Assembly (NCBI GenBank): GCA_038496445.1
Contig: JALMLS010000198.1
Span: 1-40,404, forward strand
Origin: Trichosphaerium sp. ATCC 40318
Lineage: Eukaryota; Protista; Tubulinea
DNA length: 40,404 bases
Direction: 5' to 3'
This document shows, piece by piece, positions 27,834 to 33,464 of this stretch (the stretch's first letter is position 1; each line of letters starts with the position of its first letter). The position numbers and the translations under genes are program-made. The notes beneath the pieces were generated by a model. It saw nothing but the letters and a program-made list of their open reading frames with translations, did no database searches and was not told the origin of the DNA.

Positions 27834-30346
27834 ATGGCACAAGTTATAGTAGTAGGCGGTGGCCTATCTGGTTTATCTACCGCACATACCGTACTCGAAA
27901 GAGGCGGTAGAGTGTTGGTTATTGACAAAAATGCTTTCATGGGCGGTAACTCAACCAAAGCAACGTCTGGTATTAACGGAACGCCAACGCGCACCCAAGC
28001 AGAACACGGTACGTTTTTTATTTAGATTACGGCTATGACGTCATGCTAACTCGTATAGGATACGCTGATAACGTTCGCATATTCGAAGAGGACACTGCGC
28101 TTTCAGCAAGCGGCGGTAAATCCAAGGAGCCTTCCCCACTGGCAAAGGTACTATGCGGAGAGAGTGGACCAGCAGTAGAATGGTTAATCGGTACGTTTTA
28201 TTTTAAACGCCACGTCAAGCTATTTTTTTCGTTTTCCGTTTAAAACACCTGACGAAACTCTTAAATGGGTTGTTGTATCGTAATTATGCTTACGAGACTC
28301 TTTTAGAGAAATTCGGCCTTGACATGTCTTGCCTTGGACAACTCGGTGGACACAGCTTCCCACGTACTCACCGTGGTAAAGAACGCTTCCCTGGTATGAC
28401 CATCACATACGCTTTGATGGAAAAACTAGAAGAGATTGTACGTAACAACATTATTCCCAAGTACTCTGAAAACAGCCTTCAATTAAAAAAAAGTCAACCT
28501 TTATTCTTGACTACTCGTCGTATTTGATGATTTCTCTAATTTTCTTGTCTATAGGCTGAGAAAGAACCAGAACGTGCTCGTATTATCACCAAAGCACGCG
28601 TAACAAAACTACTCAAAGGCGCAAATGGAGCCATTACTGGAGTTTCTTACGAAAAAGACGGTCAAACATTCGAAGAGAGTGCTGGCGCTGTCGTAATTGC
28701 TACTGGCGGTTACGGTGCTGATTTCAGCCAAGATTCAATTTTGCGTTCATGGCGTCCAGATATTTGCCATCTCCCTACCACAAACGGTACGTATAACACC
28801 GTGGCATAGCGGTCTCATATGTTTTAAACGTTTTTGATGACATTGAGACTTTTTTTTGATTTTATTTTTTTTGACTTTCCTCTCAGGCGATCACTGTACT
28901 GGTGATGGTATTAAAATGTCAGAAGAAATTGGCGGCGGTACAACTGATATGAAGTGGGTACAAGTCCACCCAACCGGTTTGGTCAACCCAGCTGAACCTG
29001 ATGCTAAAGTCAAGTTCCTTGCTGCTGAAGCACTTCGTGGTGTTGGTGGTCTACTCTTAGACGCAAATGGTAACAGATTCTGTGATGAAATGGGTCGTAG
29101 AGATTACGTCACCGGAGAGATGAACAAAAACAAAGGTCCTTTCCGTCTTGTCCTTAACAGCGCATGTGCATCAAAAATTGCATGGCATTGTAAGCACTAC
29201 GTTGGTAGAGGTCTCATGAAGGAGTTTGATGGTAATGGTCTTGCTGCTGATATGGGTATCCCTGTATCAAACCTCAAAAAGACATTTGACAAATACAACG
29301 AAATTGCAAAGTAAGTCTTGCCGAAAAGCCATACAACAAAAAAAACAAAAAAAAACCAATTGCTAATTATTTTTCTTTTAGAACAAAGAAAGATCCTTAC
29401 GGCAAAAAGTTTTTCCACTCTGTACCTTTCACAGTTGAAGATAACTACCATGTTGGTTTTGTTACACCAGTTATCCATTACTGTATGGGCGGTCTTTGGA
29501 TTGACACTGACGCCAATGTATTGGTACGTTCTCAGCAAAGATCAAATGACGCTTTTACCTTTTTGTTTTAAAATTCACTTCTCACATTGTGTTCAGGACA
29601 AAGGAGGTAAACCAATCCCTGGCCTATACGCTACTGGTGAGGTATGTGGAGGAATCCACGGTATCAACAGACTCGGTGGTTCTTCTCTATTGGATTGTGT
29701 TGTCTTTGGACGTGTTAGCGGATCTACATGTACTCGTTACATCTTGGATCGTATCATGTCAGGTTCTATGAACCCTCTTGGCGCTGTAAGTACAGTTTCA
29801 ATGTATTCATGTACTCATTCAATACTAGAACGCTTCTAACCGTGCCTCAATGGTTGCTGGACACTTGGCACCTACTGTTACTGTTTCTGTAACACCTGGA
29901 CAAAGCAGCGTAAACATGAACATCTCATGGGGCGCTAACGCTAATGGTAAGCTTTTTACAAGCTTTTAATACTCTGTTATTTATTTCTTCCAACAGCTTC
30001 TCAACCGCCAGCCGTCTGCGCAGCAGCACCTGCACCAAAACCAGCCGCTGCACCTGCACCAGCTCCTGTTGCTCCAGTTGAGATGAAGGAATACACTTGG
30101 GAACAAGTTGCCGCTCATAACAAGGAAGACGACTGTTGGGTTGTTGTCAATGGTGAAGTATTGGATGTGACAAAGTTCCTTCCAGATCACCCTGGTGGCA
30201 AGAAGGCTATCCTCTTGTTTGCTGGTAAAGACGCAACTGAAGAGTTCAACATGTTGCACAAACCAGAAGTTATTCCAAAATACGCACCAGATGCTGTGAT
30301 TGGCACCATTGCTGGTGGTAACAAGGCACTCAAAGCGAAGCTTTAA
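27834..30346 (+). CDS. osm1: Soluble FAD-dependent fumarate reductase (Osm1/Frd1, flavocytochrome c family) fused to a C-terminal cytochrome b5 domain; unspliced end is -KAKL (PTS1)
   Basis: [10 protein letters not shown] Rossmann motif, [61 protein letters not shown]. Ala/Pro linker. b5 motifs [14 protein letters not shown] and EFNMLH. Confidence 0.93.
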
Positions 30347-30639
30347 AACCAAGCTATCTCTCTACCTCTACTTGTTTATTAATCAAAAAAAAACTACAAC
30401 ATCAGGAGAGCCCAACTGTAAACCTCCATTAAATCCATCAACAAACCAACCCTTTCTTTTCACACCCTTAGCTAGCTGTTTTTTTTTCCTTGATTTTTCT
30501 TACTTTTTTTTTTTGGTTTCTCGAAAATTTGATTTCTCTCTGTTGGTGCACTTCGTTATTGAAAAACAATTGTTCCCCTCCTTAAATCTATAATCTCTCT
30601 ACCGTTGTTGGTCTATGTGCTCAAAATTTTTATGGTTAG

Positions 30640-33464
30640 GAAGCTGCAGCGGCGCTTGCAGAAAAAACTGAGCCAAAAAAACCAGAAGGAGGTTCTCAGT
30701 TTGTGGATTTTTCGAAACCAAACAATCCAATATCTCTCAAACCTGTTGGTGTTGCTAAGCCTGGAACAGTTGAAGGTCCTCTATGCGGTGGTACTGCTGA
30801 TGAGTTACCAAACGAGCGTAAAAAGGCTACATTCGATATTGAAACAATGACGAATATTTTGGACGGTGGTCCTAAAAAAACAGCCAGAAGACGTTGGGTA
30901 TTGGCTCCAAGTGAAGACCATGGTCAATTTGAGAACCGTTATTACTGGGATAGACCAGAAATGATGAGTCAGCATATTAAAGGATTCATTGAGATTCACA
31001 AGCAGTTTGCTTTTAAATACTTGCCTACACGTGAGGAGATATCATGGATGACTGAAAACACTATCATGAGTGGTACATTGATGAATCACTACGGATTGTA
31101 CGTTTTGATGAAAAAGAAGTTCTCTTTGACTGGTGTCTTTCAATTTTTGTGAACAACAGATTTTTTGTTTTTGTGTTTTTTCAGAAGCTGACGGATATCT
31201 TTTTCTCTTTTAGGTTCTTACCTACAATATCTGGAATGGCAAGCCCAGATCAAGTTGCTGAATGGATACCTCAAATCATTACTATGCAAATCATCGGTGC
31301 TTACGCACAGACAGGTTCGTTTTATTTCTTGTTTTTTTTCAATAAAAACTCCTTTGATATTCTTGGATGCGTTGCTTCATTGGTACTTACTGTTTTTTTC
31401 AAAAAGAGCTTGGACATGGTTCTAACGTCAGAGGTCTACGTACAATGGCTACTTATGACAAGGAGACAAAGACATTCATTATGAATACACCTACTTTACG
31501 TTCTATTAAATGGTGGCCTGGTACTCTTGGAAAAGTAGCAACACATGCTGTTGTATACGCACAACTCATCATTGATGGTAAAGAATATGGTGTACATGTG
31601 TTCTTTATGCAAATACGTGATGAAAACCACAGACCTCTTCCTGGTATTGAACTAGGTGATTTGGGACCAAAACTTGGAGATGGTGCTAATGATACTGGTT
31701 TTATGAGACTTGATAATGTCAGGTATGTCTCTCTTTTGATAGTTTGTATTAATTGTTGGCTTTTCTTGTAGGATACCTTTGTTTAACATGTTGGCTCGTC
31801 ATCAACAAGTTACACCTGAAGGAGAGTATGTTAAGTCTGATAAGAAGAAAGATCCAAAGATGCACTATGCTACTATGATGTTCACTAGAGGTACCATGGT
31901 ACGTGGTGCTGGTGGTTCTCTAGCTAGAGCTGTATGCATAGCAACACGCTACAGTTGTGTACGAAGGTAAGTATCTCGCTAAACAAAAGCAAAAACTTTG
32001 TTATTGACCAAAACGTTCAGACAAGGATTCGTCGATACTGATCAAGGTGTTCCTTACAAATCACCAGAAATGAAGATTATTGACTACCAAGTACAAAGGT
32101 ATGTATTTTATCTAAATTAGCTTCACCAGTACTTTGTGCTGCGTGTTCGATGTTAATTTTTTTTTCTTACTTTTTTCTTTTTTAGGTACCGTCTCTTCAA
32201 GCAAATGGCTCTTGCGTATGCCATTAAGTTCTCTGGTAAATGGATGATACAAAGTTTCGCTGCTCTAGAAGGATCAAGCACCGCTACATCAATCATTTCA
32301 GACACGAAAGCGCTTAAAGAAGTAGCAGCTACCTCAGCTGGATTAAAAGGTTTATGTACCTTCCTTGTTGCTCAAGGTACGGCCTTTGAAATTTCTGTAT
32401 TCCTTCTGATGAACGATTAATAACTTGTTCAATAGGCATAGAAGACTGCAGAAAATGTTGTGGCGGTAATGGTTATCTCCTAAACTCAGGAGTTGCTGCA
32501 CTTGCCGGAGATTATGTTTGGCAAACAACTGCTGAAGGAGATTGGATTCTTCTCATGCTCTTGACAGCCAGGTTCTTGCTCAAGACACTTGGTAAGGTCC
32601 AACAAGGTAATAAGGTAACTGGACCTTGCGCCTACATGGCACCAGCAGGAGGTATGATTTCATCAAACAAACAACTTGCCAAAGACTTGTTTTGCTAATT
32701 TTTTACCAAGCGTCCAATTTTGATATTCGTTCTGCTGCTCCTAGAGCGCCTACTTGCGTAGAGGACTTTCTTGATCCTAAATTTTTGCTTGCTTGGTTCC
32801 ACTACAGGTCCCTTTGTATTATTGTCGATGTTGAGAATAGATTCAAGAGGATGCTTGGAGAAGGAAAGAGTTATGCTGAAGTTTGGAATGCTAATTCTAT
32901 CGAGTTGATAAATGCAACAAAATCTCATTGTCTTGCTTTTATGCTGTCCAACTTCATCGATGAGATTCAGGATATCTCTGATGCTAAGTCAAGCCAAGCT
33001 TTGCATAAGGTTTGTGCGTTATTTGGTACTACCAGGATACTTGATGATAACTGGACAGGCTTATTTGATGCTAAAGGGTACGTTGTTTTTTGTTGGTTTT
33101 ATTTCGTTTTTTTTTGTATTCCTCACGTGCTGATTGGTTTTTTTTCCAGTTTCGGTTTCTGTAAGCAAGCTGTTAGACAGCTTCTTGATGATTTAAGACC
33201 TGACGCCATATCTCTAACTGATGCTTGGGATATTCCTGACCGTGTATTGAACTCTACATTGGGTAGAAAAGACGGTACGAATGAAAAATACTTTTTAATC
33301 AACTAGCTGATTTCTCATGTTCAGGAAACGTCTATGAAGCGCTCTGGGAGGCTACAAAGAAAGCTCCATTTAACCAAAGAGATCCTTTTGTTGGTTTCAA
33401 AGAGTCTCTAGCACCTCACTTGGATAAAGAGTTCTTGAAGCGCCATAACAAATCAAATCTTTAA
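30640..33464 (+). CDS. ACOX: Peroxisomal acyl-CoA oxidase domains, with no own start codon (predicted 3' part of an FRD-b5-ACOX fusion); ends -KSNL
   Basis: ERKKATFDIETMTNILDGG, AYAQTELGHGSNVRGLRT, KWWPG, ATRYSCVRRQG, CRKCCGGNGY, TAEGD (catalytic Glu), LRPDAISLTDAW, LGRKDGNVYE. The first exon begins at acceptor TTAG|GAAGCT. Confidence 0.92.

Follow-up and report, generated by a model that had tools for sequence, protein, structure and literature searches.

A tandem fumarate reductase-cytochrome b5 and acyl-CoA oxidase gene pair in Trichosphaerium sp., a probable split form of a redox module carried on single chains in related protists

Two adjoining genes lie in tandem on the plus strand of a 40,404-nt window from Trichosphaerium sp. 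ATCC 40318 (assembly GCA_038496445.1, contig JALMLS010000198.1, positions 1 to 40,404 of the forward strand), a stretch of 37% G+C in which introns are short and of the GTACGT...AG type. The window here means the whole of this stretch, and all positions refer to it (Table 1). The upstream gene (27834-30346) encodes a fumarate reductase (FRD) with a cytochrome b5 domain, referred to below as FRD-b5, and the downstream frame (30640-33464) encodes an acyl-CoA oxidase (ACOX), with a spacer of 293 nt between the FRD-b5 stop and the ACOX frame. An original prediction, made from the sequence alone, had joined the two into one fusion protein for peroxisomal beta-oxidation that does not depend on oxygen. 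The data presented here make it probable instead that they are neighbouring, separately expressed genes, in which a redox module found as a single chain in many related protists is split in two, with translation of ACOX most likely starting at GUG 30703. The RNA evidence consists of two assembled cDNA contigs, L009 for FRD-b5 and L008 for ACOX, both from the same species and from one JGI transcriptome-type sample (3300016894), presumably an aerobic culture; the cDNA strain differs from the genome strain by 8 substitutions in 4017 coding nt.

Table 1. Positions of the features of the FRD-b5 and ACOX genes and of other features in the window.
Feature	Position	Strand	Basis
FRD-b5 5' untranslated exon	27492..27520	+	first 29 nt of L009 identical here
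FRD-b5 5' untranslated intron, 310 nt, CAG/GTACGT...CTAAAG/	27521..27830	+	absent from L009
FRD-b5 coding region, 9 coding exons, 630 aa	27834..30346	+	clean translation; 100% identity to P0269 (L009 product)
FRD-b5 exons 1-5	27834-28008, 28059-28190, 28307-28437, 28555-28786, 28887-29310	+	
FRD-b5 exons 6-9	29382-29523, 29597-29785, 29829-29946, 29997-30346	+	
Proposed GC-AG intron including microexon 30406-30417; unsupported	30326..30639	+	L009 and L008 colinear with genome
Peroxisomal targeting signal Ala-Lys-Leu and TAA stop of FRD-b5	30335..30346	+	sequence; stop (TAA at 30344) also in cDNA
FRD-b5 3' untranslated region, minimum extent	30347..30487	+	L009 ends within T-run; ATTAAA at 30428
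T-rich tract in neither cDNA contig; may be a 3' end, a promoter or a region of transcription start	30488..30522	+	gap between L009 and L008
ACOX mRNA 5' leader	30523..30702	+	L008; out-of-frame upstream AUGs 30615 (18 codons) and 30632 (73 codons)
A_AAA_AAC heptamer, register fits -1 shift from AUG-30632 frame into ACOX frame; weak candidate	30676..30682	+	sequence
GTG, only in-frame near-cognate codon ahead of conserved block, most likely ACOX start	30703..30705	+	codon-by-codon reading of 30640-30705
Conserved ACOX N-terminal extension DFSKPNNPISL...GGTADELPNERKKATFDIET	30703..30846	+	aligned to fused and stand-alone relatives and solved ACOX structures
ACOX coding region, 10 exons, 707 aa from GTG	30703..33464	+	99.9% identity to P0177; cDNA L008
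ACOX exons 1-5	(30640/30703)-31097, 31214-31314, 31407-31722, 31772-31966, 32021-32098	+	
ACOX exons 6-10	32186-32376, 32436-32651, 32711-33077, 33150-33274, 33325-33464	+	
Ser-Asn-Leu (resembling a peroxisomal targeting signal) and TAA stop of ACOX	33453..33464	+	read from sequence
Poly(A) signal AATAAATAAA and cleavage site of ACOX mRNA	33516..33544	+	L008 turns to A-run after 33544
Cytochrome P450 (CYP) intron 1 with GC donor GAG/GCACGT	39653-39719	-	keeps ...RLDLFEE/WRQKYGDVYQ in frame
F-box plus LRR_6 genes	4843-6044 (-), 22532-23749 (+), 36474-37511 (-)		
MORN open reading frame	24104-24616		
Ankyrin open reading frame	25661-26500		

Both gene models were matched exon by exon by the cDNA, and the FAD_binding_2, Cyt-b5, and ACOX domains called in the original prediction were all recovered with Pfam. 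The FRD-b5 transcript, L009 (2070 nt), begins with a 5' untranslated region (UTR) exon, and both the UTR intron and all of the coding introns (8/8) have been spliced out; at 310 nt, the UTR intron is much longer than the coding introns of the two genes (43-117 nt). Trans-splicing of a spliced leader, considered on account of the non-matching 5' end of L009, was rejected, as the leader is this ordinary 5'UTR exon. The predicted product is a 630-aa soluble fumarate reductase of the Osm1 type with a C-terminal cytochrome b5 domain and the peroxisomal signal AKL. FAD_binding_2 aligns over its full length (residues 4-443; a profile of 414 positions), while Cyt-b5 is found at residues 548-619 (profile positions 1-73 of 74, E=1.5e-24), and the haem-ligand motifs of cytochrome b5, DHPGG and NMLHKPE, are both present in the translation. 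The C-terminus, ...KALKAKL and stop, fits the canonical peroxisomal targeting signal type 1 (PTS1), [SAC]-[KRH]-[LM], and peroxisomal targeting is therefore predicted from sequence; AKL, SKL, or SRL ends are common among stand-alone FRD-b5 homologues.

The nearest structure is that of yeast Osm1 (Osm1/Frd1, 5GLG/5ZYN; E=2e-88 for 5GLG), which likewise aligns along the full length of FAD_binding_2, with the catalytic Arg and His motifs in register. The motifs HPTG, EALRG, RD, HxxMGG, and NRLGG are shared, among them the Arg altered in 6KU6, and the full-length domain and the retention of this Arg in the alignments to 5GLG and 6KU6 place the protein with the soluble fumarate reductases of the Osm1 and flavocytochrome c3 type. 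Osm1 is an endoplasmic reticulum and mitochondrial enzyme that uses free reduced flavins, and unlike Osm1 the FRD-b5 protein of the window has in addition a linker rich in beta structure, a Cyt-b5 domain at the C-terminus, and a PTS1. The same two domains make up the FRD-Cyt-b5 proteins of fungi and protists (annotated as 'fumarate reductase (NADH)' or 'flavocytochrome c', as in Rhizophagus and Syncephalis), which are ~610-640 aa long and 60-65% identical to the window protein. However, many of these have no PTS1, and none is reported as a partner of ACOX.

For ACOX, the frame does open at TTAG/GAA (30640), as had been predicted, directly after a TAG at 30637-39, and it runs for 728 codons to a C-terminus of ...KSNL and stop. 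Its transcript, L008 (2393 nt), has all 9 of the 9 ACOX introns removed and ends in an A-run that begins after 33544. The product, ~707 aa long with SNL at its C-terminus, would be a peroxisomal acyl-CoA oxidase, translated from its own mRNA with a 5' end inside the 293-nt spacer. In P0177, which is 99.9% identical to the window ACOX, Pfam finds Acyl-CoA_ox_N, Acyl-CoA_dh_M, ACOX_C_alpha1, and ACOX in this order. The protein aligns to the ACOX1/ACX1 structures 2FON, 1W07, and 1IS2 at about E=1e-130, and it shares with these enzymes the four ACOX domains and the catalytic Glu: its TAEGDW aligns to TYEGDN of tomato ACX1 (2FON), in agreement with a T-x-E-G-D/E motif, and the corresponding catalytic base is Glu421 in rat ACOX. 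The catalytic motifs of both window proteins are intact. Unlike ACOX1/ACX1, which pass electrons to O2, the ACOX subfamily found in the window has a conserved N-terminal extension of ~35 aa (DFSKPNNxISL...GGTA) and is often fused to b5 and/or FRD. The tripeptide SNL is a non-canonical, PTS1-like end; most homologues have SKL, AKL, or SRL in its place, and SNL, ANL, or PNL is seen in a few.

The proposed fusion depended on splicing from a phase-0 GC donor, AAG/GCACTC at 30326, to the acceptor at 30640, either directly or by way of a 12-nt microexon, CAG/GAGAGCCCAACT/GTAAAC (30406-30417). The elements of this proposal are all in place: the donor is in phase 0, the join of 30325 to 30640 is in frame, the microexon is there, and there is no AATAAA in 30346-30640, with only an ATTAAA at 30428. 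The ~1300-aa polypeptide expected from such splicing, with or without the microexon, is not supported by the cDNA. L009 is colinear with the genome over 29997-30487, through GCACTC, the TAA, the supposed microexon, and GTAAAC, and L008 begins at ~30523 and is colinear through ATG 30615, ATG 30632, TTAG/GAA at 30640, and an A7 run to 31097. Two separate cDNA contigs thus read unspliced over the donor, microexon, and acceptor, and a TAA at 30344 closes the upstream frame, so the locus does not encode an FRD-b5-ACOX single chain in these transcripts. On the question raised by the original prediction of whether ACOX has a 5' end of its own, L008 points to one in the spacer, and the assembled contigs contain no junction to FRD-b5. 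The tract at 30488-30522, between the L009 and L008 ends exactly, has the form T10...T5...T11; in the promoters of dictyostelids, oligo-T tracts are known to lie immediately ahead of the transcription start.

Where translation of the ACOX mRNA begins is less straightforward. From the FRD-b5 stop to 30846 there are just two ATGs, at 30615 (frame 0) and 30632 (frame 2), both out of frame, and the first in-frame ATG, at 30847, falls within the conserved N-terminus, as had been pointed out before: solved ACOX structures align from ...LPNERKKATFD, upstream of this ATG, and the Pfam Acyl-CoA_ox_N match begins 4 residues ahead of it. The block DFSKPNNPISL...GGTADELPNERKKATF (30703-30846) is shared by relatives of both the fused and the stand-alone kind, and all solved ACOX structures contain part of it. 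Over the 207 nt of 30640-30846, the genome and cDNA strains show 0 differences, whereas 6 events fall in 258 nt of flanking UTR, a rate at which ~4.8 differences would be expected under neutrality (P about 0.008). Because an absence of differences is improbable under neutrality, 30640-30846 is probably translated. Most stand-alone homologues have their start Met 6 to ~45 residues before DFSKPNN, with some starting after it, and since GTG 30703 is the sole near-cognate in-frame codon in that region, initiation at GUG 30703 is the solution that we tentatively favour, at slightly less than an even chance. The IMG gene call P0177 also begins at this GTG, directly before Asp-Phe-Ser-Lys.

The alternative that fares best against a GUG start is that ACOX is translated only from AUG 30847 (MTNILDGG...) and that the conserved block upstream is a relic, no longer translated, of a fission or start-codon loss in the very recent past. 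This AUG is the first in frame and has an A at -3, the homologue P0247 is annotated with its start at the same Met, and the UGA (30848-50) of the 73-codon upstream open reading frame (ORF) from AUG 30632 overlaps it as AUGA (30847-30850), a layout like that of termination-reinitiation and compatible with such a mechanism. We nonetheless consider this unlikely, as the product would lose both the LPNERKKATFD segment, which aligns to every solved ACOX, and the subfamily extension DFSKPNN...GGTA. The lack of strain differences upstream and the out-of-frame AUGs ahead of 30847 also speak against it. The AUG-30847-started product was absent from the protein collection in an exact look-up.

Several observations weigh against reading the locus as two separately expressed genes with a GUG-started ACOX whose products work together. 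A poly(A) tail was not seen on L009, and AATAAA was not found after the FRD-b5 stop. The two contigs end only 33 nt apart in the T-rich tract, so that both could derive from a single read-through transcript. The acceptor at 30640 scores 4.4, inside the range of confirmed acceptors (3.8-15.9), and the 30325-to-30640 junction is in frame. In the ACOX mRNA the first in-frame AUG comes as late as 30847, two out-of-frame AUGs lie upstream, and the -3 base of GUG 30703 (U) is a poor one. Finally, the passage of electrons from ACOX through b5 to FRD is something that we infer for every member of the family, window and relatives alike.

The points on transcript ends, acceptor, reading frame, and lack of an AUG would also suit an isoform switch, in which the GC-AG intron 30326-30639 is spliced sometimes, possibly via the 12-nt microexon and, for example, under hypoxia, to give an FRD-b5-ACOX protein of ~1290 aa, while unspliced RNA gives FRD-b5 with its PTS1. 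The linkers of fused relatives are similar in length and composition to the one that this splice would create, a GC donor is plausible in the CYP gene of the window, and the genome does have an intron as long as 310 nt. However, both cDNA contigs cross the donor, microexon, and acceptor unspliced, the AKL signal would be lost by splicing, and a fused ORF of the window organism is absent from the best 120 of 779 matches (433-1377 aa) and from 3 matches of 84-266 aa. The donor itself is also poor: with a scoring matrix built from the 18 cDNA-confirmed introns of the two genes, the confirmed donors score 6.2-16.9 (n=18), GCACTC at 30326 scores -3.8, and all other donor candidates before the FRD-b5 stop score -2.9 or lower. 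A G at +5 is found in 18/18 of the confirmed introns and not in GCACTC. We therefore regard the conditional splice as rather improbable, slightly more so than a start at AUG 30847. Joining a GT donor, GTAACA at 30318, to 30644 was rejected, since the two sites score -2.9 and -9.7 and the junction is not in the cDNA. A pattern for the fusion junction had no match in a collection of metagenome contigs, but neither had a control pattern taken from L008, so the sample is absent from that collection and the negative carries no weight.

Although the locus probably yields separate mRNAs for ACOX and the 630-aa FRD-b5 protein, the idea of a fusion holds in many relatives. ACOX exon 1 was searched with HMMER against 1.8 billion representative proteins, and a profile search was also made. 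Some of the exon-1 matches align the ACOX N-terminus deep inside a longer protein, and Pfam shows these to be fusions, including FRD + ACOX (P0041, 1188 aa), three copies of b5 + ACOX (P0025, 1016 aa), the FRD end + b5 + the ACOX N-terminus (P0021, 412 aa), and b5 + ACOX (P0006, P0007, P0024, and P0043). In the profile search, FAD_binding_2, Cyt-b5, and ACOX were found together on dozens of chains 1280-1367 aa long, among them complete Trinity ORFs such as P0175, from the amoebozoan Nematostelium gracile (EukProt). Genomic sequences agree with this. P0041 is a single intron-free ORF on a 9.9-kb contig with the eukaryotic neighbours RAD24, Bax inhibitor, and MMS19, and in P0021 one genomic exon covers the FRD end, b5, and the ACOX N-terminus, on a contig that has introns elsewhere. 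It is clear from these transcriptomes and intron-free genomic ORFs that the FRD-b5-ACOX architecture is real in relatives of the window organism. The search for this architecture in eukaryotic proteins that the original prediction had suggested thus succeeded: among retrieved proteins with a complete ACOX part, at least 44 public ones are FRD-b5-ACOX, 4 are FRD-ACOX, 20 are b5-ACOX, and 50 are ACOX only. Most proteins of the retrieved set end in xK[LF], which is PTS1-like.

Two members of the family have unusual features. In P0025, from a JGI contig, each of the three tandem Cyt-b5 domains is preceded by a Cys-rich motif, CxKCxxGxCxC. In the cDNA-like stand-alone ACOX of Logan SRR23320464 (L001:721-729 and L001:1261-1266), TAG stands at three conserved Trp positions, so that IKWWPG reads IK, two stops, PG and GKWM reads GL, stop, M, with TGG at other Trp sites. 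Possible causes of these TAG codons are an artefact of the assembly, a change of G to A by editing or hypermutation, decay to a pseudogene, or some oddity of codon use.

Unrooted FastTree phylogenies, one for the ACOX part and one for the FRD part, were compared with these architectures, bearing in mind that some architecture labels may reflect truncated ORFs. The labels interleave on both trees, with at least 26 label changes required on the ACOX tree, and each label still requires 3 to 11 changes when well-supported branches alone are counted. Because the fused or separate state has changed many times on the trees, the module is evolutionarily labile. The window ACOX is sister (support 97) to P0203 (FRD-ACOX) and P0210 (a stand-alone ACOX), and the window FRD-b5 groups with stand-alone FRD-b5 proteins. 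The interleaving is compatible both with the split state of the window being ancestral and with its being a product of fission. P0392 (FRD-b5) and P0155 (FRD-b5-ACOX) were considered as isoforms of one locus; they are only ~87% identical and must come from different genes or organisms.

The fused relatives (P0175, P0155, P0206, P0041, P0025, and the b5-ACOX protein P0232) have parts that are 50-62% identical to the window genes and in the same order, and they share the ACOX N-terminal extension and PTS1-like ends. The difference is that their parts form one polypeptide, whereas in the window a stop with a PTS1 and the 293-nt spacer intervene and there are two mRNAs. For the electron path proposed below, each half may find a precedent in a flavocytochrome, and both of these were among the sequence matches of FRD-b5: in flavocytochrome b2 (1FCB), a flavin dehydrogenase feeds a fused b5-type haem, and in Shewanella flavocytochrome c3 (1QJD), a haem domain feeds the flavin of a soluble fumarate reductase. 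These analogues differ from the window pair in their substrates, haem types, and cell compartments. A Cyt-b5-acyl-CoA dehydrogenase fusion, FsACAD of Fusarium sacchari, is also known in fungi (PMC11817166). Like the module proposed here, it joins a flavoenzyme predicted to dehydrogenate acyl-CoA at the alpha,beta position to Cyt-b5, but it belongs to the acyl-CoA dehydrogenase rather than the ACOX family and has no FRD. In the full-text literature, a scope that leaves subscription journals largely outside, we found neither a report of ACOX joined to b5 or FRD nor one of an FRD that serves ACOX as a peroxisomal partner. The redox module that is split in the window is apparently undescribed so far.

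Since FRD-b5-ACOX single chains exist in many relatives, a functional link between the two neighbours is well founded, and this part of the original functional model can be retained; the electron path is the part that we infer. The repeated fusion in one order and the PTS1-type ends are together an argument for joint action of the parts in peroxisomes, where both window proteins would meet. On the simplest reading, electrons would pass from acyl-CoA to the FAD of ACOX, from there to the b5 haem and the FAD of FRD, and finally to fumarate, in trans in the window organism and in cis in fused relatives, and the outcome would be an oxygen-sparing, H2O2-free first step of beta-oxidation. The wiring can vary, as some forms join FRD to ACOX and lack b5, and others join b5 to ACOX and lack FRD. 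With standard potentials near -10 mV for enoyl-/acyl-CoA, near 0 to +20 mV for b5, and +30 mV for fumarate/succinate, the path from acyl-CoA to fumarate is roughly thermodynamically neutral to favourable. It is possible, and we propose it with less confidence than the GUG start, that FRD-b5 and this ACOX subfamily constitute an acyl-CoA:fumarate oxidoreductase for O2- and H2O2-free beta-oxidation that makes succinate, operating here in trans or through a rare conditional GC-AG splice, with ACOX started at GUG.

It could also be that the adjacency has no mechanistic meaning, in which case ACOX would be an ordinary O2-reducing, H2O2-forming oxidase and FRD-b5 an Osm1-like enzyme at work for other flavoproteins or in redox balance. 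Each protein is complete by itself and close to canonical families, stand-alone ACOX relatives have unrelated neighbours (L005/L006), and stand-alone FRD-b5 is widespread in fungi. Against this, dozens of relatives have the same two or three modules fused, and in one and the same order, and in the window the genes lie in tandem with 293 nt between them and end in a peroxisomal signal (AKL) and a PTS1-like tripeptide (SNL). We consider a meaningless adjacency about as improbable as the conditional splice.

Peroxisomal beta-oxidation is, in textbooks, O2-dependent, as ACOX makes H2O2. That ACOX is fused to a b5 haem domain and a fumarate reductase in Amoebozoa and in many environmental eukaryote contigs speaks, by Rosetta-stone reasoning, for an alternative and dedicated electron sink and bears on how low-oxygen protists may handle peroxisomal fatty acids. 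The fused relatives are directly testable recombinant targets, and the split locus offers a natural comparison of cis and trans arrangements. The AUG-less ACOX mRNA poses a second, smaller puzzle, on translation initiation.

With respect to this puzzle, it is very improbable that ACOX is produced by a -1 ribosomal frameshift, or by a transcriptional A-insertion, at the A_AAA_AAC heptamer after initiation at AUG 30632: the heptamer is in register and the shift would enter the ACOX frame 7 codons ahead of the conserved block, but folding of 30674-30790 gives z = +0.86 and no stable stimulatory structure, the A7 run is the same in cDNA and genome, open +1-frame runs as long as the 73-codon frame-2 ORF are common in these genes, and the route would be inefficient for a bulk metabolic enzyme. 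An indel error in the A7 or A6 homopolymer, which would bring ATG 30632 into frame, was rejected because the run lengths are the same in the cDNA. A 65-nt intron, ATG/GTTAGG...CTCAG/ (30635-30699), giving M+FVDFSK, was likewise rejected, being retained in the cDNA and scoring 1.6 at the donor and -7.7 at the acceptor.

Elsewhere in the window, the GC donor that had been predicted for intron 1 of the CYP gene, GAG/GCACGT at 39719 on the minus strand, agrees with the sequence, as it is needed to keep the ...LFEE/WRQKYG frame; judged from its sequence, it fits the local GTACGT consensus except at +2. Also present are MORN and ankyrin ORFs and several F-box plus LRR_6 genes, a family that looks expanded in the window.

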